Shown: positions 5,928 to 26,000 of the stretch, one piece after another | How positions within the stretch are numbered: the first letter of the stretch is position 1 | How the letters are laid out: each line of letters begins with the position of its first letter | Source of the DNA: Klebsormidium nitens | Lineage: Eukaryota; Plantae; Klebsormidiophyceae | Assembly (NCBI GenBank): GCA_000708835.1 | Contig: DF237122.1 | Coordinates: 62,001 to 126,000, forward strand | DNA length: 64,000 bases | Direction: 5' to 3' | Notes under the pieces: model-generated | Database searches by the model: none | The model's input: the letters and a program-made list of their open reading frames with translations, nothing else | Told to the model about the DNA's origin: nothing | Program-made: the position numbers and the translations under genes

Positions 5928-7251
5928 GATGATGCGCCTCCGCGCCTTTCTCACCACTGGCACAAGTCTAGGAATCGCCCGCAGCAGCGCAGCTCTGGAA
6001 ACAGCTCCGTATCACTATCTAGCAGATTGACCCGAGTTGACCCCAGCACCGGTGGTTCGGACCGGGTGAGTACAGTGCCGGGGGAAAGCGCCAACAGGAA
6101 CCGTTGTGCTCCGCCCGTGAGCGAAATCAGAGACGAGTGGGCCGTTTCTTGGAGGAGTGCTGAGAACCGGCTTCTAAGTGGTCGGTAGCTTAGGTCCCGG
6201 GTACCAAATTTTCACTGACGATTTTGGGTCTTATACCCTATGGCGCAACTAGGCGCTTATTGTCCATAAGGTATGAAGCTGCCAGTAGCTGATGGGGGCC
6301 ACTAGCTAGCTAGCTAGCGCTCGCTAGCTCGCAAGTTGCTGTTGCTTGGCCAATCAGCGTCGTGAGTGGCAGCTGCGTACTGGCTGTGGCTTGGCGCAGC
6401 TTGCATGCAAACTCCAACTTGCTCAGATTCTCTGCTCGTTCTCAAGCGCTCAGAGCCCCAGTGCATCTGGAGAGATCTGAACACAGAAAGAGAGCCAGTG
6501 CATGAAGCCTTCAGAAGCAGCATTCTTGTTCAGAAATGGCATCAGAAAACTTTTTGCACACCATCACGGACAAGTTTCCTTAAAAGCAGCAGCTGCAGAG
6601 GAGTTTCTGAGTTACCTTGAGCATCAGGAAAAGGAGTAAAACATATCCATGCTCATGTCCAACGCCAGCGCCAGCTTCATGCAGGCTTGATTGAAGCAAT
6701 CAAGGGAGGGCGCCAGCTCGATTTTGGCCTCAGCTTGGTCCTTGTTGGTATTGAAATTGAGGATCAAAAGAAGACTCCGTCGCAAGTAATTGTGCGCTGA
6801 TCAACCACCTGGTCAGCTCTTTGCCATTGCAAAGAAGAGTTGAAGATGGGGGCATTTGGGACCACAATTGTGAGATTCTTGCTACGATCTCTTATCTGGT
6901 GCTATTCTTGATTTTCCAGAAAGGGAGGAAGAATCTGAGAAGCCCGCCTGATCTCTATTCCAAAGATAGCATCTGGGACATCAAGATAGTCATTTGTCTC
7001 CAAACAAAAGAGAGCATGCGGTCTGCTTATCAATCTCTTGGCTTGTCAAGCAAACACCTTGAATTGAAGCACACCTCTATATTGAGATTCTATACGATCG
7101 CATGCGACGGAAGCATCTCAAATTACTCTTTGAAGGACTTTGTGTGCTCGTTCGGTCCTGGTTTTGCTTTTGAGACCCTTTGATTGACTTTGCCACCCAC
7201 TATCGCAGGATGGTCGAAGCATCGCTCTCAGTGGGGAGCCTCTTTTCCCAG

Positions 7252-10200
7252 GCTTCGACCGCAAAGAGTTCAGCAAAGCCGATAAAGATGCGGCCCGTTC
7301 ACAAAATTACTTCAAGGACAGGACGCCGAGCATCACTCTACGCAATCAGATACAGCTGTCCACCTATGGTGATGCGATCGGCGGGGACCTTGAGCATCTG
7401 AAGAAGTTCGTTGATGAGCACCTTGGAGGTGAGGACAGATTTTCTTCTGTATGACTGGTTTCTTTGCGCATGAGGTGGTGGTAGCTTTTCAAAATTTGTC
7501 ATGAAAGGTCAGCTTCTAAATAGCCTGGGTAGAAAAGGAAATGCTTTTCAGACTTCTTTCTATTCATCGATGTTGACATTCCCAGCTCATGATGCGAGCT
7601 TTGATCTTTCATGGTGTGCTCTGATCTTTCATGGTGCGGACAGGGAAGCCTCAAATCGATGCACTTTCTTATCTCCTTTGGGTTTACTATTTTGTTGCTC
7701 CTTTAGGAAAGTAATTGAGAGCAGTCTCCACTTGCAAACACTTCCATTTTGTTGCCAAGGCAATATTCACAAATATCTTAAGTGCCTTGATACTGGTACG
7801 GCTGTCTCTCTCTCGGTCATCTTGAGGGCGCCTTCGCTCTGTCATCTTGACGGCGGCTTTCTAAACTAGTCTGATGCTGCCTGCAGGCGCCTTGGGTAGT
7901 GTCCACCTGCTGCCGATATACCCCTCCTCAGGCGACAGGGGTTTTGCGCCGTTGACGTATCATCAGATCGATCCCGAGCAGGGCAGCTGGGATGATGTTC
8001 GGGAGTTGGGCAAGGAGTATGACTTGGTTCTTGACTTCATGCTCAACCACGTTTCGGCCCAGTCAAAGATGTTCAAGGACTATCTGGCCAAGGGGGAGAA
8101 GTCGGAGTATGCTTCCATGTTCATGGATTGGGACAAGTTTTGGGGGGAAGGTGAGCTGCGGCCGGCTTTGTTCAAACGGTTCGGCTTGTGAACAGAGTAC
8201 TGATGCCTGTCCAAGTTTCCCTGATGCATTGGTTGAGGCTGGGAAACGCTTTTCAGTCGTTGTCTGGTCGTTCTGATGCACTCAAGGCGCGAGGAAAGCC
8301 CGTTCATAACTCTATCGTCATTCAAGAGAGATTGCAAGCACAGATTGCGCCTGCTCATCCTTTTCTCTGCTGACATCGAAAGCACACTTGCGCTTGGTCA
8401 ACAACGCTGAGTTCCGAAAGTAAACCCATAGTAAAGGCTGGCAATGTCTTCAAGGTCGTAAGTCTTCCACATGCGTTCATAGACGTGTTCCAGGCATAGA
8501 AAATATCCAACAAAACCCGATTGGAAGATCGGGAGATGAGGGGAAAAGTAGAGCCACTGTAAGCAAAGACTTGAAAGGGACAAATGTCAATCGAAGCAGG
8601 ACAATTGACTTGAAGGCGACTGAAGAGAGAACAATCTTGCATTTTTGTGTCTCAGGTGGTCCTGGAGAGAAGGATCTCGCGAGCATCATAACACACCAGG
8701 GCGACCTTCCGATGATCGAAGTGACGCTCGAGGACGGAAGCAAGAGACGGCTTTGGAACACGTTCGGACCCGAGCAGATTGACATCGACCCCAAGTCCCC
8801 AGCAGGTAAGCAGAGTGTCGTGTCAGAGTGAGGTTATGTTGCTTAGGACGTGAACTTAAACACAAGTATCAGCATCTGAAACTTTCCGTTCTGTGAGTCC
8901 TTGACCAACTGCTCGATCGGCTCGTTTGCTTGCTCTTGGTTTTGTCCTCGAATGATATTCTGTTAGTGCTTCGTCCACGTCTCAATCTTCCTTACGCAAT
9001 TAGGCGTGGCTTGGAGAAGCCTGAGCGTGTGTCTCGACCGCTTGGCTGATTGCCCCTCACTTCAATACGTAGCCTGCATCCCACTTACTACGCTTTCTCC
9101 GCGCAGGCTGGAACTTCGTTACGAAGTCGATCAAAAACCTTTGCAGCCACGGGGTGAAGGTCATTCGGCTGGACGCCTTTGGGTGCTTCACGAAGAAAGC
9201 GGGTTCGGAGTGCTACTTTGAGGTGGGTGTACTTGATTGCAACAAACGCTTCAAGTGGACCACAGCCCGAAAAAAGCGGACTCGTTTTGTGATCAAAATG
9301 AGTAGCTTATGTTTGGCCAGTGCAGATGCGTTTGGAAGCCGAAGAAACATTAAAGTGATGGTTGACTGCTTGTGTTCACAGTTTGTCTGTATATTGTAGC
9401 GGAAAGTGTACTTGCGGTCGGTTGCCTATCTTGTTCCCCAAAGAGCTGCCCCAAGTTGTGGACACACGTCCCGAAAGCCGACTCGTGTTGCCCTGGTCGA
9501 CACTAGCTGACACGTGTTCCCTTTGCAGGAGCCAGAGGTGTTCGACATGCTGGATAGAGTGGGGAAGCTGATGGAAGAGTCTGGGACGAGGTGAGGGCAT
9601 TTTACATCGTTCCTGTTCTCAAACGCGTCTCGTGATGTTGGAGATGCAAAGGTTTTGGTATCATGCTACTCGACATGGTCCGCTGCAGTATTCGAAGACT
9701 GGGGTGCTTTTGAGTTGATTTAAATAGTCGGTAATCTGGACGGTGTTGCGCCGCTGCCGTAATCTCCCTTTGCACAGCTTGCTTCTGCTTTCTGTGCTTT
9801 GTATCGAAGCTGTTTTCTCCTTGTTGAAGCAATTCTGAGCCTGTCGGTTGGATGTGCGAAGCTTGAAAAACTTTACTGGGCCGTACATTTGTTCTTGATA
9901 TCTCGACCCTCGGAGTCAGCCCTTGGAGTCATAGTTTGTTGCCCCACTCTGTGGTTCCCTGTCTTCTGCTCTTCCGTTCGTGAAATAGATGATGAGCACC
10001 TCAACCCAGATTTGTCATATCCCCCACACGTCCTCTCGAACTCCCCATATTCCGCCCAGGTTGTCGGGCGAAGTTACCTTTGTTTCGTAAACCACTTACA
10101 TCAACAATCTCTTCCTCATTGGAATTGCGGACATACTCTTACCACGATCCTCAACCTCCGGCCAGGTTGCTGTGCGAGGTCCATCAGGACTACCGGTCCA

Positions 10201-12213
10201 ACCTGTTAACAAGTCACGTAATCAACAATTTCTCCCTGATTGGAATGTCGAACGTACTTTAACACGAGCCTCAACCTCCGGCCAGGTTGCTGTGTGAGGT
10301 TCATCAGGACTACCGGTCCAACCTGAAGATCGCGGAGCGCGGCTACTGGGTGTACGACTTCTCGCTGCCGCTGCTGGTACATCACGCGTTCCACTTCCAA
10401 ACCGCGCTCAACCTGCGCAAGTGGCTGCACATCTGCCCGCGCCGCCAGGTCACCACGCTCGACACACACGACGGCATGGGCATCGATGACGTCACAGGCC
10501 TGGCTGACGTGAGCGGCTGATCTAGCTTCTATTCCCTATTCGATTTTGTCATTGGGCGAGCCCTCAATGGCTTCACGTCTTGTCCAACTCGCTGCGCGGT
10601 TCCTGTATTAGTCGCTTACGAATGTGTTGACTAGCTCTCTCGTTCACAAACGCTGGCCGCCCATCTGCTCACAATACGACATGATCTAGCTCCGGCAGGT
10701 CTACACAGTGTTAGCTATCATACAAGCGTCAAGGCGTTTCGTCTGAGCAACCTGTTCTTTAAAACCGATTTTATGTCGCAATCGTCCGACTTGGCGCCCG
10801 CTTTCGCATGTGCTACTTGCGCATCGAGTACTTTTCTAACTACACGTCCGTTAGAAAGTTGTGACAGACACACTCGTTTCGGCTCCCTCTCTCCTCGGCC
10901 AATTTTCGTGCTTCTCGTCTCTTCCATCACGCCTTCCTTAACCCGTTGACTACTCGTACAATCTGATTGGCCGTTAAGTTACTTCCATTCCCTCCTGATC
11001 GGTTGTTGAGTTTCTCATATCCTCTCCCCTGCCAGATCTGCGACCTGCAAGAGCTGGAGAGCCTGGCCAAGGGCGCCACCACTCAGGACCTGGCGGCCAT
11101 CACGAAGAAATACTTCTACGACCCCAAGAAGGCCTCGTACGTGGACGCCGTTCACCAGATCAACAGCACCTACTACTCGGCGTGCGAGGAGGATGACCTG
11201 ACGTACCTGCTCGCGCGCGCCATCCAGTTCTTCTGCCCGGGCGTTCCGCTGGTGTACTACAATGGAATGCTGGCCGGAGTGAACGACGCGGATGCGGTGC
11301 GGCGGACCGGCGTGCCCCGGAACATCAACCGGCCGAACTACAGCTACGAGGACGCGGCGAAGCAGGTGGGTGGTTGGCCGGTTGGAATTTCAGAGTTTAT
11401 ACGGTCATTGTTCGGCAAGTCGTGAAGCCGTCTGATTGCTTGTCCGCTTTGACGGCTTGCCGGTTTGTAATCAAGTTTTGCAACAGTATAAGCTTGAGGA
11501 CGGTGGGCTGCTTGAAAGACACGCAGACGATCCTACTGTAGATGCAAATTGATGGTCAGAAACTAGTCCCAATTCATTTCCGATTCCCCGAAAACATGGG
11601 GTTTTTAAACACGATCCAAACTCGTGTTCGGACAGCGGAACTCGCAAGTGAATGCAATTTGATATGCTAAACTGTTGCTCTGTGGCGGTCCCCTGCGAGA
11701 CAAGAGCGGAACGCTTTCGTCAATTCTTCGTTGCAGAAAGGGTACAGAGGTCCAAGTAAGCACCCTCCAGCCGGTAAAAGTAAATGCCGAAGCGCACTCA
11801 CTCAACATCTCTTCTGCTCTCGAGTTGCGAGCACATTTTGGAGTTGGAGCCTTGAAGCTTGACGCAATTGCTGACGCCTTTGTTTCCTGTGGTCTTGCCA
11901 GATGCAACGGCCGGTGGTGCAGGCGTTGCGCGACTTGTGCCGCTTCCGGAACCAGCACCCCGCGTTCCAAGGACAGATCACCATCTTCGACGATGAGCCC
12001 GAACATGTTCTCAAAGTCCGGTGGGCGAACGGGAAGGACTACGCGACATTGACTGCAAACATCAAAACGCGGTCCTTCGATCTGCGGTACACTACCGGAG
12101 GCCACGAAAGTTCCCCGATCCGGTGCGTGAGGTTCCAGCGAGAAGGAGGCCAGGAGGGGTTCCCGGAGGGTGACTTTAACGAAGAAGATGTTGTCTTCGT
12201 GTGCGCGAAGTAG
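7252..12213 (+). CDS. GH13 subfamily 18 sucrose-phosphorylase-like enzyme; exons 7252-7428, 7887-8150, 8656-8805, 9107-9222, 9529-9590, 10286-10508, 11036-11365, 11902-12213; first exon(s) upstream unresolved
   Basis: The spliced translation carries the family motifs in order: NQIQLSTYGD, VHLLPIYPSSGDRGFAP, DFMLNHVS, LWNTFGPEQID, IRLDAFG (nucleophile Asp), LCEVH (acid/base Glu), YDFSLP, TTLDTHDG, QINSTYYSA, RAIQFFCPGVPLVYY, RNINR, RFRNQHPAF. These closely parallel Streptococcus/Leuconostoc GtfA as I recall it. All seven introns are GT-AG with matching phases. Confidence 0.93.
10103..10325 (+). repeat. 120-bp tandem duplication covering the 3' splice site and first 40 nt of the 10286-10508 exon of the GH13_18 gene
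   Basis: 'cctcaacctccggccag|gttgctgtg(c/t)gaggt(c/t)catcaggactaccggtccaacctg' occurs with the exon start at 10166 and at 10286. The upstream copy runs into TAA at 10260-10262. Confidence 0.93.
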
Positions 12214-13077
12214 GGAGCTCGACTGACGAGTGTTTCGCATTTAATCATTTGATGATTGACCTCTGTTGAGGGTTGCGATTCCGCATTCAAAATTGCTCGC
12301 TACTGATAAGGTAGAGACTGCACGGTGAGAGGTTGTTGCAACGTGACGCAGCTGCACGCTTCGGTACGGTTGGAAACGGCCCGCTATAACGGATGGTAGC
12401 AATTATTGCTCGCATACATCCTTGTTATAGACATTGTCATTTAGGACATAACCCTTTGAGCTTTTCAGGGTCAGGCTGTCATTTGCAGCAAGTAGTTGTT
12501 GACCTCTAGGCGCACATAATCATTCAATGCATCGCACATGCCAGGATGTGGACGTTCAAACACGGTCAAATTGACTTATCAAACACACAATAATATGTGC
12601 TCCATCTGCCGAAGGGTGTCGGTGACTACATCACTTGATTGATGATCTTTACTAATTTGCATGGAGCAGTTGAGCCGTGCAACTTCGCGAGTATGTATGT
12701 TATCACCTTTAACAATCGGATTCAAGTTTGACGGAGTCGAAAGGATGCACGTACCATGACATGATGGCAGCCCGTGCTTTCAAAGGTGAGATAACTGCTC
12801 CATGCATGGTTTCCTCGAGCCGCAATCGGCGAAGGGCTAACGAACCGCGGCGCAACAATGGACGTTGTACGTGCCTCAGTAAGATTGTCTGGTATCTTTG
12901 TACCACATGCTTATATCACCATTCTGCCTCGTGTTGTACGTTTCATCATCAAAGAAATCCCTGATCTGGTTTGGAATCTATTCTTAAATCGTCAGAAGAT
13001 ATTCGTACGGAAGTTTCCTCTCATCAGCTGCCATCGGTGTGCTGGGTCAAGTGACTCAACAGTGAGCAAAGCTCTAG

Positions 13078-18200: not shown

Positions 18201-21200
18201 TTCGTTCCCATGCCTATCTGAATCGAAGTGAAGGTACAAACATCAAACATCAAGCCGTGAACAACAATGAAAGGACGTGGTGCTCTATCTCACTTTAGAG
18301 CTAAGCCGCTATAAACAATGTTGAGAAAGACAATGTGTAGTGGGCTTCTTACTTGTGAATCTCCTGCCCCGGCCTCATCAGTGTCATCATCCACGTGGCC
18401 CCTGCGTCCAGCCCCGGCTGCGAGATTTCGAGGCCGTGCCTCTTTATCAACGCCAGATACCTGCAGAGGAATTGAATAATCTCAGAGTTCGACAACAAGC
18501 ATTGGATATATCGACGCCGGATACTTGGCCGAAGAATCCGGGTTCTTTCTGACTTTCTGGGCACGGAGTATGGAAAGAAAGTGCCCTGTCGAAGTTGGCC
18601 CCGGCAACAGCGGAGCTGGGAGCCTTTGCCCCGGATTCATGTGACACTGACTTGCACGGTTTCCAGGGACGCTTTTGCTAGCGCGCACTAAAATTCAAAG
18701 ACTTGAGTGGCCTCGCAAGTCACGATGATTTCGATAGGTGGTCCTCGACGAAGAAACGTTGACCGGTAGACACCAACCACGAACTGACATCGATGTCGCC
18801 GGTCGAGTCGTTCCAGATACAACAAAAAAGTATTAAGCAAGAAGTATCCTGTTCGCACTCCGCAGATAACGACAAAACGTGCTCGCAAGCAACTCGCTCT
18901 CGCACGGAGAGGATGTTGATACATGCTTCCGGTCGAACAAGCACACAAGAAGGGGTCGGCAAATAAATCGGAAGGATCCGGTTGTCTGCATGTCAGTCGG
19001 GGGACTGACCGGGAGGCATTGAAGTTGTCGAGGCCCAAGTCCTCGTCCCAGATGAAGATGTAATCGTACGGCTCCACGATGTCAGGGTGAAGGAAGCGCT
19101 TCGCAAACCACCTGCAGAGCAAGCGACCGGTGGATCGATGATTGGTTGATCTTTTCTGCCGCTTGATTGGCCGGTTAGCCAATGGTTTGCTTGACAGCGT
19201 CAAACATCTACCGTTGAGATTGTCGGAAAAGTTTTTAAACCGACGGCCAGCAACATTCGAAGCAGAATACTCGCATATCTAGACACCCGTGAAAGAGGAA
19301 CGGAATATTCGTTCCAGTAGTCAGAGCCTTTACAGAAGTCTCGTCGCGCTCTTTTGACATGCTGGCAATCATGCTGATGTAGAAACTATGGGTGCTCAAA
19401 GCGCCGCCAATATTCAAGCCCGAAACTCAACCGAGGCGACTCGAGCAGACGGAAGTTACAACAATTGAATTCCGCACCGGTAAGCGAAGTTGAGGTGTCA
19501 GAAAGATGTGGGCGCTCACCATTTGCTCTGCCTCTTGCCCACAATGTGGATGGCGGCGTCGAACCAGGGGGACGTATTCCACTGCTCGACGATCCCATCG
19601 TAGTGAAAGATGAGGTACACGAAGTCGGACGCCGGGAACTGCAGCGACGGGTGAGCAGGCAATCACTAGTCAGCAATCAGATCAAAAAGATTGGGAAACT
19701 TTCTGCTTCGAAAGAACGACAGAGCATATGGGCTTCTGTTTTCGCTCAGGTCACTTTTAGGGATGTCAAAAGCGTTTGTAAGCTAAAATGGTTCCCCTTC
19801 TTGCGGTCAGTCTTGCGCTAACCTTGTTTTGGATTCCTTCCCGGCACCGGCCAACCTGTCGTTCACTGTTAAATGGACGTCAGACTCAAGCGAAGGGTTT
19901 CCTTTGAAATAAAAGCCTACAGACCACCGAAGTCTCAAGCTACTCAACAAAGATCGAGGTGCCTCCCCTCCTCGATACTTGAACCATAATCCTCGCCTCT
20001 TATTGACGGAAAAGCATCGTGCCCCTTTCAACAAGGCGAGGCAATAAGCCAAAGATAAGAATGCCGGTTCGTCACCTTCCCGATCGCGCCGACCACGTTT
20101 CTTTGAAGCGAAACATAAAAGTAACAACGTGCTTCCCTTTCAAAAGAGAAACCTGCCTCCAATCGAGACGAAAATGAGAGCTTCTCTTGAGTAACTTCGG
20201 TGGCTCACCTTCTCAATCATGTTGTCAACATTCTCCTTCTGCTGGATCCCCGCCGTGATCACCAGCAGGTTGCGCGGCTGCGACCCCTGCAGGTCCTCCT
20301 CAGGACGCCCCCAAAGGCGCCGGAGATAAAAGTCGCTCGTGCTCGCCACGATCTGGGGGGGCAGGATGCGCGCCTCGGGGGGTATCCGGAAGTCGGTGTG
20401 CGGGTCGAGGGGCTGGGAGGGGGCCTGCGAGAGGGCAGGGGAAATAATTCATTTCAAGGTCGGTAGTGTCTAACGAGTCTTCCTTTTGAAGGGATCTACC
20501 AGACAAGACCCCTGAGCAGTTGAGGCTAGTGGTTGGACGCGTCACAAATACGCATTTGTCCTGAAATGGTGTCCATCATTTGATGCGCTGCAGCATGGGA
20601 GTGCGTAGGTACGAAGCTGAAGGCACAACGGCGTCCTAGTGAACTGTTAAATCGTAGTTTCAACAAGTCCCCACAGGACCAGGTGACCACCGGATCATCA
20701 ACTGTCACTCGGATGCAACATTGATCATGCTGATATGGAGCTTTCTGTAGCTTGGACCTTGAAACCCGTTTCAAGTAGGAAAACGAACTCCCTGGAAAGT
20801 TCGTGAAAAAAGGACCCTTTACATTAGGGGCAGTGCCTCAGTCAACCTTAGAAAGTACACCAGTTGAAAATGAATCAGAAGTTATATGCGACGTTCTATC
20901 ATCACGGGCACACATCGAAATCAATCAGCTTTGTAACGAGTGATGGGCAGCCCCCCGTGTCGCAATTCCATCTTCAGGACCCAGTCTTGAAAAAGAAAAA
21001 ATCCGAAATGATTGTGCATCATGAACAGTCAGCTCAGATAAGCGACTCGATTTGCAAAGCACGTCACGTACCTCAAGTGAAGCAGCTTCTGGCGCTATGT
21101 CTAAGCGGCCAAGTTTGGACCATGGCTGCAGAACAAAGAATAAAGATCAGGCACTGCCTGCGCTCATCAGTTCAAACATAAAGATAAACCCCTGATAACG

Positions 21201-23018: not shown

Positions 23019-26000
23019 ATGCAGATAGACTCCGACAACTCTCGAGGGGGCCGCGGGCCCGTCTGGCGTGGAGGGGGGCGCTCCGCCGGTCGCAGCGGGG
23101 GCAGGAGCGGGGGTGGCACCGCAAATGTCCCCTGCCGGTTCTTTCTGGAAGGGAAATGCGAGCGGGGGGACGCCTGCAATTTCTCGCACAACGTCGACCC
23201 AGGAGCAGTGGCCAATGGACGGAAACGAATCTCGGAACGGGGGCCGGCGGCGCACGACCCGCGGCCCGGGGCGTCATTTGGCGGCGGTAGAAATGGGTTG
23301 GGGCCGAGTGGCAGCGCCTTTGATCGGTTAGGTGGTCAAAGTGGTCAAAGCCCGTTTGATCGCCTAGGGGGAGGCGCTCCGCAGGCGCCGCCGGCGGCGG
23401 GGTCTGGGTACGGTGCTTATGGAGGGGGGGGGATGCAAAACGGGGGGCAAGGGGGCAGGGGCCAGCAGGCGCGGTTTGGGCGGCGAGGGGGGGGTGCCGG
23501 GAGGAGTGGGCCGCAGCAGCAGAAGCGGGGGGTGTGCCGGTATTGGCTGGGCGGGTCGTGTAGAAACGGGGCGAATTGCAACTTTTTGCACGTGCACGCG
23601 ACAGCGCCGGACGTGGACCTTATGACAGAGCTGAAAGGGCACGAAAAGGCGAGGTTATTGGCCAACTTAGTGTGATGAAGGATTGAAATCTATCAAAGAA
23701 GAGGGGTTCCATCAGGTTTGGGTGTATGGCGCAAAGTGGGTGGTTTGTTCAATTGGTGGTAATGGTGGCACCTTGGATTTTGAACTTGCAATCTGGAAGT
23801 TAGACCTGTGGTAGTGACGGCTGTACACGAACTGTGGCGCGCCGGTTGATCGTCTCTCGTGCTGTCAGATTCATATCCGAAATATATTCTGCAATAGTGT
23901 TTGAGAAGAATTGATTCTTGTTTCCGCATATGGGTGCCTTGCTGGGTGACACGTAGACAAGAAAGCCTTTGCTGGCCAGTGGAACCCTAATTTGGCTTCG
24001 CTAGTTTCTTGCACCTACAGTTTTAGTGATGGTGTTGTTCCTATTGCAATTGTCATGAAGCAGACCCAATTGATGCACCACTCGTAGTATCAGATTTATT
24101 AGATTGTCAAAAGGTTTCACGGTGAATCGTGCATCTGGAATCGGCGCTTTCTGAAACTTTTTCCAACCTTCTACCCGAGCACTCCAGAATCAAGCATCAT
24201 CTGCATGGTCCTGTCATCCAATGCTGCCACTTTTGTGCCCATTCTGAAAGTAATTCGCTCAGCACTCCTCGTCCTTAGTTGCTAAGAGAAGCCATTCCCA
24301 GACTCTGTGTATGTAATACTGACAATCCTTGTTTGCTGCATCGATGCAGGCGGTTCGGGCCATTGCCTTGCCTGCGGGTTCAAGCGAATTGTATACCGGG
24401 AGTCAAGATCAGTCTATACGTGTATGGGACTGTGAAACTGGGCAGGTGCGGATCCCTCTTCTTCTATCAGTTGTTTTGACGAAGCAGCTCGAAGATTTTA
24501 GCTGGGTCCCTGATCAAGTGCAAATTTGTACCATTATGAGGGTCCTGTGCTGATGCTCATCGGAGGAAGTTTGCTTTATTTTTCAAATTGATGTGGCGGG
24601 CTAGATCGGTAGCTCCGTATGAGTGTTACGAGCAGTATCATATCTGTTTACCGTTGTTTTGATTGCACTTTAGGGATAAGTGCGGCGATTAGTCAGCAAA
24701 TTTGCACGATTTGCAAATTACCGTTGTTTCGAATGCTTTTCTAGAGATTAGTGCTGCGATTAGTCAGCAATGATTTGCAAGTGACATGCCTAGTCACACT
24801 TTCTATTGCACATTCTGAGTTTCTTGCCGTCCTTGCTTGTGGACAGTGTAAAAGCGTCGTGCCGATGGGTGGGGATGTGGGGGCCCTGCTGACAGAGGCC
24901 GGGTTCTTGTTTGTGGGTTTACCAAATGAAATTAAGGTGAGTTCTCGCGTTTACGGGACGAAAAGAAGGTGAAGAGTTGGCAGTCTGGTTTATTGACTAG
25001 CGCTGATCCGTTTACACCCATGACAGAGGCAGGACCAGAAGTGGGTCAGATTCATGGGTCAGCATGTCTTCTTTGCTAGGAAGTAATGCGCTTTCGGTTC
25101 AGAACAACTCTACTAGAGCGGAATGCATCGAAGATTTAGCCTGAAGCCCCAGTCATAGTCACGTGACTCTGTTGGCTCGCACAATATATGTATGCTCTGT
25201 CGGACTCCATTGTTCACTACATCCTTTTGCCATTCTTTGGTCCCTGAATCGGATCCTGCCTGTCCTGATTCGGACCTGGACATGCGACTTAGTCCTTGTT
25301 TGCTATCCCAAGCTTGCTCGAGAACTGCCATTCTGGTTTATTAAAATGCAAGTTCTCACCGTCGTCAGTCTTTCGTCAAACTGAGTCTGTCTGTGCCCGC
25401 AGGTCTGGAACATGCAGAGCGCCCCTCCAGCCCAACACAGCCTCCCGGGTCACGTGGGTCAGGTCCATTCGCTTGCGGTCGGAAACAACATGCTCTTCAG
25501 TGGAGCCCAGGTGCGTCTTTGAACGAACTTTTCGAAGATTGCTGTTCACAAAAGTCGTCCTTGGGCGGCGAACGGTTCCTCTGATTAGCTTACATTAAAG
25601 AAGGCAGTTTCGTTGAGACGCAAGCGATCGGAGGCGATCTTCAGGCTGGCCTTACGTTCGGAATCGATCTGGTCCGACCCTAAGAGTTGAGGAGGGGTTG
25701 CGGGCCTCGACATGCCGAAGCTTTCCGTGGAAGGGCTGTCTTCGGGACCTTCAGTCGCTTTCGTAACGTGCTACTGTTCTTTACATATCGGAACTTGGAT
25801 CGGTCTCTCAATACTTTCTTTTGGGCTATGCTCCTCGACGTTTGTAAGCATGATTTACGGCGTCAAGAGTATTCTCTCCGTTTCTTAGTCCCTATGGTTC
25901 CTTCTTATGCTCGATGAGGTTGGAAGAGGGTGTTGTTGGCATTCGAAGAAGGATAAGTAGTTTCCTTTTGTCATATGTCTCTGTACATCGAAGAGGGTTA

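Follow-up and report, generated by a model that had tools for sequence, protein, structure and literature searches.

Invertase and sucrose synthase are the enzymes by which land plants split sucrose, and the GH13_18 family of phosphorylases is used industrially for glucoside synthesis. The subject here is a GH13_18 gene of the terrestrial streptophyte alga Klebsormidium nitens, located on the forward strand at positions 6846-12213 of a 64,000-nucleotide stretch of contig DF237122.1 (positions 62,001 to 126,000; assembly GCA_000708835.1), referred to below as the window. The closest described genes are the 'sucrose phosphorylase' (SP) genes derived by horizontal gene transfer in K. nitens NIES-2285, the Sphaeropleales and Coccomyxa C-169 (Nat Commun 2026, PMC13315243). 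They belong to the same family, come from the same kind of organism and are read in that report as acquisitions from bacteria; the Klebsormidium gene is very probably the present gene or a paralogue of it. That report treats the genes as SPs, and for the Klebsormidium copies its main text offers neither a gene model nor a comparison of introns or a study of the active site. A bacterial origin in Klebsormidium is already published in that 2026 report; the new details given here are a corrected gene model, introns held in common with another alga, and a pocket unlike that of any tested enzyme.

In K. dissectum desiccated at 20 °C, the transcripts that increase include SP (Rippin et al. 2019, PMC6691101). 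A link to desiccation was suggested when the window was first read from its letters (the sequence-only reading), and the published induction makes it plausible, although the paralogue concerned is not specified there.

Among enzymes with solved structures, the SP of B. adolescentis (BaSP; 1R7A, 2GDU, 2GDV) differs from the algal protein in that the latter carries a 52-residue N-terminal and a C-terminal extension of about 40 residues and an inserted Ala, and is encoded by a gene split by eight introns. TtSPP of Thermoanaerobacterium thermosaccharolyticum (6S9V), a promiscuous sucrose 6F-phosphate phosphorylase, is the top-scoring structure for exons 2 and 7 (108.6 and 81.3 bits) and has the VHQ end of loop A in common with the window, whereas Arg134 is lost in the alga, the motif GFDVHQ is unmatched and the exons fall outside the TtSPP clade. 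Glucosylglycerol phosphorylase (GGoP; 7XDQ, 7XDR) and glucosylglycerate phosphorylase (GGaP) share the subfamily and the -1 subsite and act on osmolyte glucosides, in line with the suggestion of the sequence-only reading; the window lacks the VGAIYQ of GGoP and the (T/S)ETN and loop-A Glu of GGaP. The closest full-length proteins are uncharacterised bacterial GH13_18 enzymes (Spirochaetota, Desulfobacterota and Verrucomicrobiota; for example L019, L012 and L051) together with 7QQJ, which are 49-52% identical over the exons, lie in the same region of the tree and have RLDAF and TLDTHDGIG-type motifs in common with the window. They differ in loop A (NLD(I/V)YQ), loop B (YTRKPRPP), Tyr196 and the Arg or Lys at 134/135, and they lack terminal extensions and introns. 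We regard it as likely that the locus is a transcribed nuclear GH13_18 gene belonging to an algal clade inside bacterial diversity, and a divergent paralogue that encodes a probable cytosolic glucoside phosphorylase.

Gene model and transcripts

Transcript contigs from four runs, representing four studies and two near-identical organism labels that would suit the change of name between K. flaccidum and K. nitens, were compared with window positions 6450-12449; being stored as contigs, the RNA runs demonstrate that transcripts exist and are spliced but give no measure of expression level. They define an intact gene of nine coding exons and eight introns, all GT..AG, in which the eight exon joints are identical in every run covering them. 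The exon lengths total 1701 nt (566 codons and a stop), each exon is free of stops in its own frame, and the encoded protein has 566 residues. Between 29 and 42% of the sampled words of the stretch are present in 20 public runs from eight studies, which is about the exon share of the stretch. The features are as follows, all on the + strand, with exon ends given as contig joints after application of the cut shifts.

6343-6845, +: 5' untranslated region in the first exon; the 5' end is approximate and several upstream ATGs lie inside
6846-6869, +: coding exon 0, ATG plus seven codons (MGAFGTTI); joint 6869>7209 in four runs
6870-7208, +: intron 1, GT..AG, phase 0
7209-7428, +: coding exon 1, the rest of the 52-residue N-terminal extension and then the start of the conserved domain, RNQIQLSTYGD (from joints and translation)
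7887-8150, +: coding exon 2, -1 subsite residues Asp50/Phe53 (SGDRGF) and His88 (LNH); TIGR03852 positions 29-116, 126.5 bits; 6S9V, 108.6 bits
8656-8805, +: coding exon 3, loop B of domain B, where IITHQGDLP replaces IYRPRPGLP; Phe156 and Gln160
9107-9222, +: coding exon 4, nucleophile Asp in RLDA; Cys at the Tyr196 of relatives (RLDAFGCF)
9529-9590, +: coding exon 5, 62 nt; contig joints 9220>9527 and 9588>10284; kept in the sister-species copy L001
10100-10325, +: tandem duplication, 120 bp, 1.9 copies, 88% matches (Tandem Repeats Finder)
10286-10508, +: coding exon 6, acid/base Glu232 and His234 (CEVH), His289 and transition-state Asp290 (THDG); TIGR03852 positions 227-295, 78.6 bits
11036-11365, +: coding exon 7, loop A (YVDAVHQ) and Arg399 in RNINR; aligned to 6S9V and 1R7A/2GDU
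11902-12213, +: coding exon 8, C-terminal beta-domain, tail of about 40 residues and stop codon; 77% identical in L001
12214-12584, +: 3' untranslated region; end approximate, contigs extend 116-135 nt past 12449

The first exon is covered by contigs without a break from 6450 to 6869, and contigs extend up to 107 nt upstream of 6450. The start codon at 6846 is the first in-frame ATG, with an in-frame TGA upstream at 6798-6800, and 52 residues precede RNQIQL, the point where bacterial enzymes begin. The sequence-only reading had rightly seen an intact gene that ends with the stop codon at 12213, but its count of at least eight exons and seven introns gives way to nine and eight. Its start at 7252 is wrong, in that the exon begins at 7209 and a further exon upstream holds the ATG at 6846; and the N-terminal extension, which it put at about 30 residues, is present but longer. 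The spliced transcripts that it called for are there, with eight joints in contigs from four studies.

We also note that the leader, of about 500 nt or more, contains several upstream ATGs, such as that of a 45-codon upstream open reading frame starting at 6502. The long leader with its upstream reading frames suggests either translational control or a second, downstream transcription start. Contigs of low depth (3-6, versus 30-270 for the exons) cover 6889-7179, 10701-10919 and 11336-11928, which include parts of introns 1, 7 and 8, and probably represent unspliced precursor or retained introns. The 120 bp tandem duplication in intron 6 includes a second copy of the 3' splice site and of the opening 13 codons of exon 6, and the transcripts use the downstream copy (joint to 10284/10286). 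The upstream copy would run into a stop, and the contig of one run breaks there.

Catalytic core and acceptor site

Profile, structure and relative searches were done exon by exon, as were the trees described below. The NCBIfam model TIGR03852 (sucrose_gtfA) is the top family for six exons, and the six pieces match it in strict order at profile positions 29-116, 121-168, 169-203, 227-295, 321-401 and 404-468, the lowest E-value being 1e-36. Profile positions 204-226, left free by these pieces, are filled by the 20 residues of exon 5, and in alignments with bacterial enzymes the exon-1 piece corresponds to their residues ~4-32. The exon scores sum to about 379 bits against a curated cut-off of 334.4, a rough sum of local scores that differs from a whole-protein score. 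Pfam searches with single exons match with exon 2 alone, to the generic Alpha-amylase model. Among solved structures, the strong matches of exons 2 and 7 are all GH13_18 enzymes (6S9V, 7QQJ, 7QQI, 7XDQ and 1R7A/2GDU; E 1e-30 to 1e-16), and for exon 2 the GH13_18 chains score from 1.6e-30 to 1.4e-09 whereas other GH13 chains score 8e-06 or worse; our literature search found no paper on PDB 7QQI/7QQJ. This colinear match to the GH13_18 family is far beyond chance and, with the GH13_18 structure matches, bears out the earlier assignment of the gene to the sucrose-phosphorylase family.

Residue numbers are those of BaSP, transferred through HMMER alignments to 1R7A/2GDU and 6S9V, and the roles of residues and the loop motifs that define GH13_18 specificities are taken from published work (PMC7178133). 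The GH13 catalytic triad is complete, with the nucleophile Asp192 in exon 4 (RLDA) and the acid/base Glu232 (CEVH) and Asp290 (THDG) in exon 6. The glucosyl (-1) subsite is conserved at Asp50, Phe53, His88, Arg190, His289 and Arg399, and Phe156, Gln160, His234, Asp342 and Gln345 are also retained, all as in BaSP. With the catalytic and glucose-contacting residues retained, both the catalytic machinery and the glucose side of the pocket are intact.

The acceptor (+1) site is of a different kind. Loop B reads IITHQGDLP where SP has IYRPRPGLP, such that Tyr132, Pro134 and Arg135 are all replaced (by Ile, His and Gln respectively) and neither Arg nor Lys is left at 134/135. Loop A reads YVD-A-VHQ versus NLDLYQ in SP, with one Ala inserted after Asp342, Leu343 changed to Val and Tyr344 to His, and Tyr196 is replaced by Cys. 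A Cys at 196 occurs in none of 26 full-length representatives and none of 78 named bacterial enzymes, and in the same two sets the basic residue at 134/135 is lost in none of the SP, sucrose 6F-phosphate phosphorylase and GGoP-type sequences. Comparison with the published signatures gives the same picture. SP sensu stricto (EC 2.4.1.7) has N(L/V)D(I/L/V)YQ in loop A and Tyr132-Arg-Pro134-Arg135 in loop B, neither of which is seen in the window. The TtSPP signature is matched at His344, but Arg134 is His and GFDVHQ is absent. The KXXYYQ loop A of the strict sucrose 6F-phosphate phosphorylases (IcSPP, RgSPP) is absent, 6S9U being the weakest of the GH13_18 structure matches. The VGAIYQ of GGoP, which is seen in reference P0068, is absent, with a Cys at the position of its Tyr (Tyr194). 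The window has CEVH and Gln where GGaP has (T/S)ETN and a loop-A Glu, and it lacks the GEXRPYE/AETD of the myxobacterial clade.

All of the unusual loop changes are also present in the sister-species copy L001. Since the sister species keeps every change, the pocket appears to be deliberately different rather than decaying. The +1 site fits none of the four characterised specificities, which may be the novel aspect of this gene, and the label 'sucrose phosphorylase' is accordingly unproven and finds no support in the acceptor-site residues of the present copy.

Relatives, origin and genomic residence

L001, a metagenomic contig (JGI 3300060284), carries the copy of a sister species. Its exons are 77-93% identical, the seven introns that could be checked agree in position and phase, and both the N-terminal extension and the unusual loops recur in it. 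Summed over seven exons, the ratio of nonsynonymous to synonymous substitution rates (dN/dS) between the window and L001 is 0.086, with dS about 1.2; for the N-terminal extension alone it is 0.14. In the introns ahead of exons 6 and 7, L001 also carries degraded fragments that repeat the 5' parts of these exons, one for exon 6 and three, ~175 bp apart, for exon 7, at the following positions.

8784-8864, 10317-10424, 10488-10568 and 10663-10782 of L001: partial exon copies

Duplication at intron/exon boundaries seems to be recurrent in this gene.

A search of representative proteins with exon 2 gave 1344 relatives and returned no full-length protein of the K. nitens genome. The 11 best relatives of exon 2 are 58-78% identical and are exon-sized fragments on unannotated contigs of up to 3.4 Mb, which points to eukaryotic DNA; full-length bacterial proteins begin at ~54% identity in this exon. 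Several of these sequences (L002/L004/L006) represent a second eukaryote, present in GCA_030012885.1, GCA_030012865.1 and Antarctic cryptoendolithic rock metagenomes. Introns 2, 4, 5, 6 and 7 are common to the window and the second eukaryote in both position and phase and intron 3 is off by one codon; intron 8 is absent from the second eukaryote, in which additional, private introns occur. In its loops (TRKP, Tyr196, GRPHQ) this eukaryote departs less from the usual pattern than the window does.

A scan of bacteria and archaea with one genome per species gave 593 relatives, the nearest 80 of which are 52-63% identical in exon 2 and belong to the Spirochaetota, Desulfobacterota, Bacillota, Chloroflexota, Bacteroidota and others. 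Over all exons the Spirochaete and Desulfobacterota enzymes are closest. An earlier tree of fragments with 24 references was an unresolved polytomy; the addition of 25 named bacterial sequences, giving a maximum-likelihood tree of 49 full-length references with the exon peptides as separate rows, resolved clade membership but no donor. For exon 2 (98/92) and exon 6 (98/99), this tree groups the window, L001 and L004 in a single clade. Every exon is placed within a clade of 31 rows that also holds Spirochaete, Desulfobacterota and related enzymes of bacteria, and none is placed in the TtSPP-type clade (100/100), in the canonical SP clade or with the GGoP row. With the exons outside the TtSPP-type clade, the loop-A His looks convergent with that of TtSPP.

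The favoured scenario is that the gene was acquired in a single old transfer from a bacterium to an alga, and subsequently underwent intron gain and duplication; it is supported by the common introns and by the grouping of the algal copies inside bacterial diversity, and the common intron positions indicate that such a transfer would be old and not recent. The ancient horizontal acquisition proposed in the sequence-only reading is upheld in each of its parts. Bacterial ancestry is seen in the nearest full-length relatives, which are bacterial, and in the placement of the exons; residence in a eukaryotic genome in the eight spliced introns and the neighbouring genes; and antiquity in the introns common to a second, alga-like eukaryote and the monophyly of the algal copies for exons 2 and 6. 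Vertical descent, or inheritance from the plastid endosymbiont, in place of transfer from a heterotrophic bacterium could draw on the same common introns, which show the gene to be old in green algae. This is nonetheless very improbable, as there is no cyanobacterium among the nearest 80 bacterial loci (exon 2), the family is reported in PMC13315243 to be absent from the Volvocales and to have been thought, until that study, absent from plants and cyanobacteria, and its distribution in algae is patchy.

Open reading frames near the gene encode a DUF707 protein and two CCCH zinc fingers in tandem.

18688-19203, -: DUF707 open reading frame, E 1e-17
23019-23675, +: two CCCH zinc fingers in tandem

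These neighbours are eukaryotic, so the gene is not an assembly contamination, and the sequence-only reading, which thought contamination unlikely given the introns, was sound on this point. The family is overwhelmingly bacterial, which might suggest that the locus came into the assembly with bacterial DNA, or that it is a dead pseudogene. Both can be dismissed with near certainty: eight spliceosomal introns are removed in transcripts, the frame is intact under purifying selection (dN/dS 0.086) and the neighbouring genes are of plant type.

Among the other relatives, three metagenome fragments (P0046, P0051 and P0037) form a second eukaryote-like GH13_18 group in which exons 1 and 2 are fused and a different intron lies inside exon 2; their longer N-terminal extension closes with the same (T/L)L(R/L)NQxQ(L/I)S motif. 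Among eukaryotes the family seems to extend beyond the two lineages considered in this analysis. P0047 (L003:5001-6956, ENA ERZ21831104) is a bacterial protein of 651 residues with an N-terminal TIR domain and a GH13_18 domain in which both catalytic Asp residues are Glu (RLEA, THEG). Its gene lies upstream of a Zn-ribbon gene and an SNF2/DEAD helicase gene, and the product may have a sensory role, as a TIR protein that detects sugar, and not an enzymatic one. P0087 (1505 residues) has a GH13_18-like stretch at about 897-963, with two matched stretches.

Substrate, location and meaning for the alga

By analogy with the family, the Asp of RLDA would attack C1 of an alpha-D-glucoside in a retaining double displacement, the Glu of CEVH would protonate the leaving group, and phosphate would release alpha-glucose 1-phosphate (Glc1P) from the glucosyl-enzyme. 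The enzyme would in this way yield Glc1P from a glucoside that serves as store or osmolyte, at no cost in ATP or UTP; the gene would be a divergent paralogue, and its substrate could be sucrose, sucrose 6F-phosphate or another glucoside. Since the acceptor loops are not those of SP, the 'non-plant route for sucrose or osmolyte-glucoside turnover' of the sequence-only reading is safe only in this hedged wording. The N-terminus is not like a transit peptide, and a cytosolic location is therefore predicted as the most likely. A chloroplast or mitochondrial transit peptide was considered and set aside, the extension with its seven acidic and eight basic residues being untypical. N-myristoylation of the MGAFGT start was likewise considered and is not claimed, as the start of the sister copy (probably MGMFGV) fits the motif less well.

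If the enzyme is a true SP (EC 2.4.1.7), it would convert sucrose and phosphate into Glc1P and fructose during recovery from stress. The literature and the JGI/IMG names on related fragments carry that label, the rough sum of exon scores against the TIGR03852 equivalog exceeds the cut-off (~379 vs 334 bits), and the nearest bacterial clade has the SP loop A NLD(I/V)YQ. Asp342, Gln345 and His234 are retained, sucrose is the main osmolyte of Klebsormidium (PMC4873514), and 'SP' transcripts rise with those of SPS, SPP and SuSy on desiccation (PMC6691101). We nevertheless think this identity unlikely, because N(L/V)D(I/L/V)YQ is replaced by YVD-A-VHQ with its one-residue insert and the change of Tyr344 to His, loop B has gone from YRPRP to ITHQG with the loss of Tyr132 (fructose) and Arg135 (phosphate), and Tyr196 is Cys. 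A promiscuous sucrose 6F-phosphate phosphorylase of the TtSPP type would link Glc1P and fructose 6-phosphate to the plant pool of sucrose 6-phosphate. TtSPP (6S9V) is the best structure match of exons 2 and 7, the VHQ that closes loop A includes the His by which TtSPP binds the 6F-phosphate, and the copy of the second alga retains both this His and Arg134 (TRKP). This identity is nonetheless improbable for the window, in which Arg134 is His, GFDVHQ is unmatched, the clade motif MLDCHDGIP reads TLDTHDGMG, and all exons lie outside the TtSPP-type clade (100/100), with the common His apparently convergent.

A further possibility, which we entertain tentatively, is that of a neofunctionalised paralogue, either with a new acceptor specificity or with a weakened use of phosphate that would make it a hydrolase or transglucosylase. 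The loop signatures of SP, both types of sucrose 6F-phosphate phosphorylase, GGoP, GGaP and the myxobacterial clade are all absent; Cys196 is found in none of 104 bacterial relatives, and the SP, sucrose 6F-phosphate phosphorylase and GGoP-type sequences among them show no loss of the basic residue at 134/135. Cys196 and the non-basic 134/135 are kept in the sister species under strong purifying selection, and a glycoside of unknown identity accumulates in cold-acclimated Klebsormidium (Nagao 2008, as cited in PMC4873514). Against this, the proposal comes from sequence alone, SPs are promiscuous and their loops plastic, and the relatives sampled were the closest 104. The gene product might then perhaps be not an SP but an enzyme of undescribed acceptor specificity or nucleophile use (Cys196, His134/Gln135 and a loop A longer by one residue, with His-Gln at its end), which would then have arisen following a duplication within the Klebsormidium lineage, conceivably for the glycoside of cold acclimation.

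Several points weigh against the reading preferred here, that of a probable cytosolic glucoside phosphorylase encoded by an old bacterial acquisition. Within the 31-row clade the position of the fragment rows differs by exon, and so the donor cannot be named. The Antarctic rock metagenomes in which the second eukaryote occurs are lichen-dominated (bioRxiv 725200), and its assignment to lichen-type green algae is inferred from this occurrence. Four of the seven BaSP residues that set the affinity for phosphate or fructose are replaced (Pro134, Arg135, Tyr196 and Tyr344), three of which, Arg135, Tyr344 and Tyr196, contribute to phosphate affinity in BaSP (PMC7178133); dependence on phosphate is accordingly not certain. 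Finally, we found in the literature no assayed enzyme of the algal clade, nor any assayed eukaryotic GH13_18 enzyme.

On the preferred reading of a glucoside phosphorylase, a phosphorolytic route in a terrestrial streptophyte alga would save one ATP or UTP per glucose, and phosphorolysis may aid recovery from drying or freezing, a point that is already in print. The transcript-supported gene model, with its true start, is ready for cloning, and assay of the enzyme could add a fifth specificity to GH13_18.

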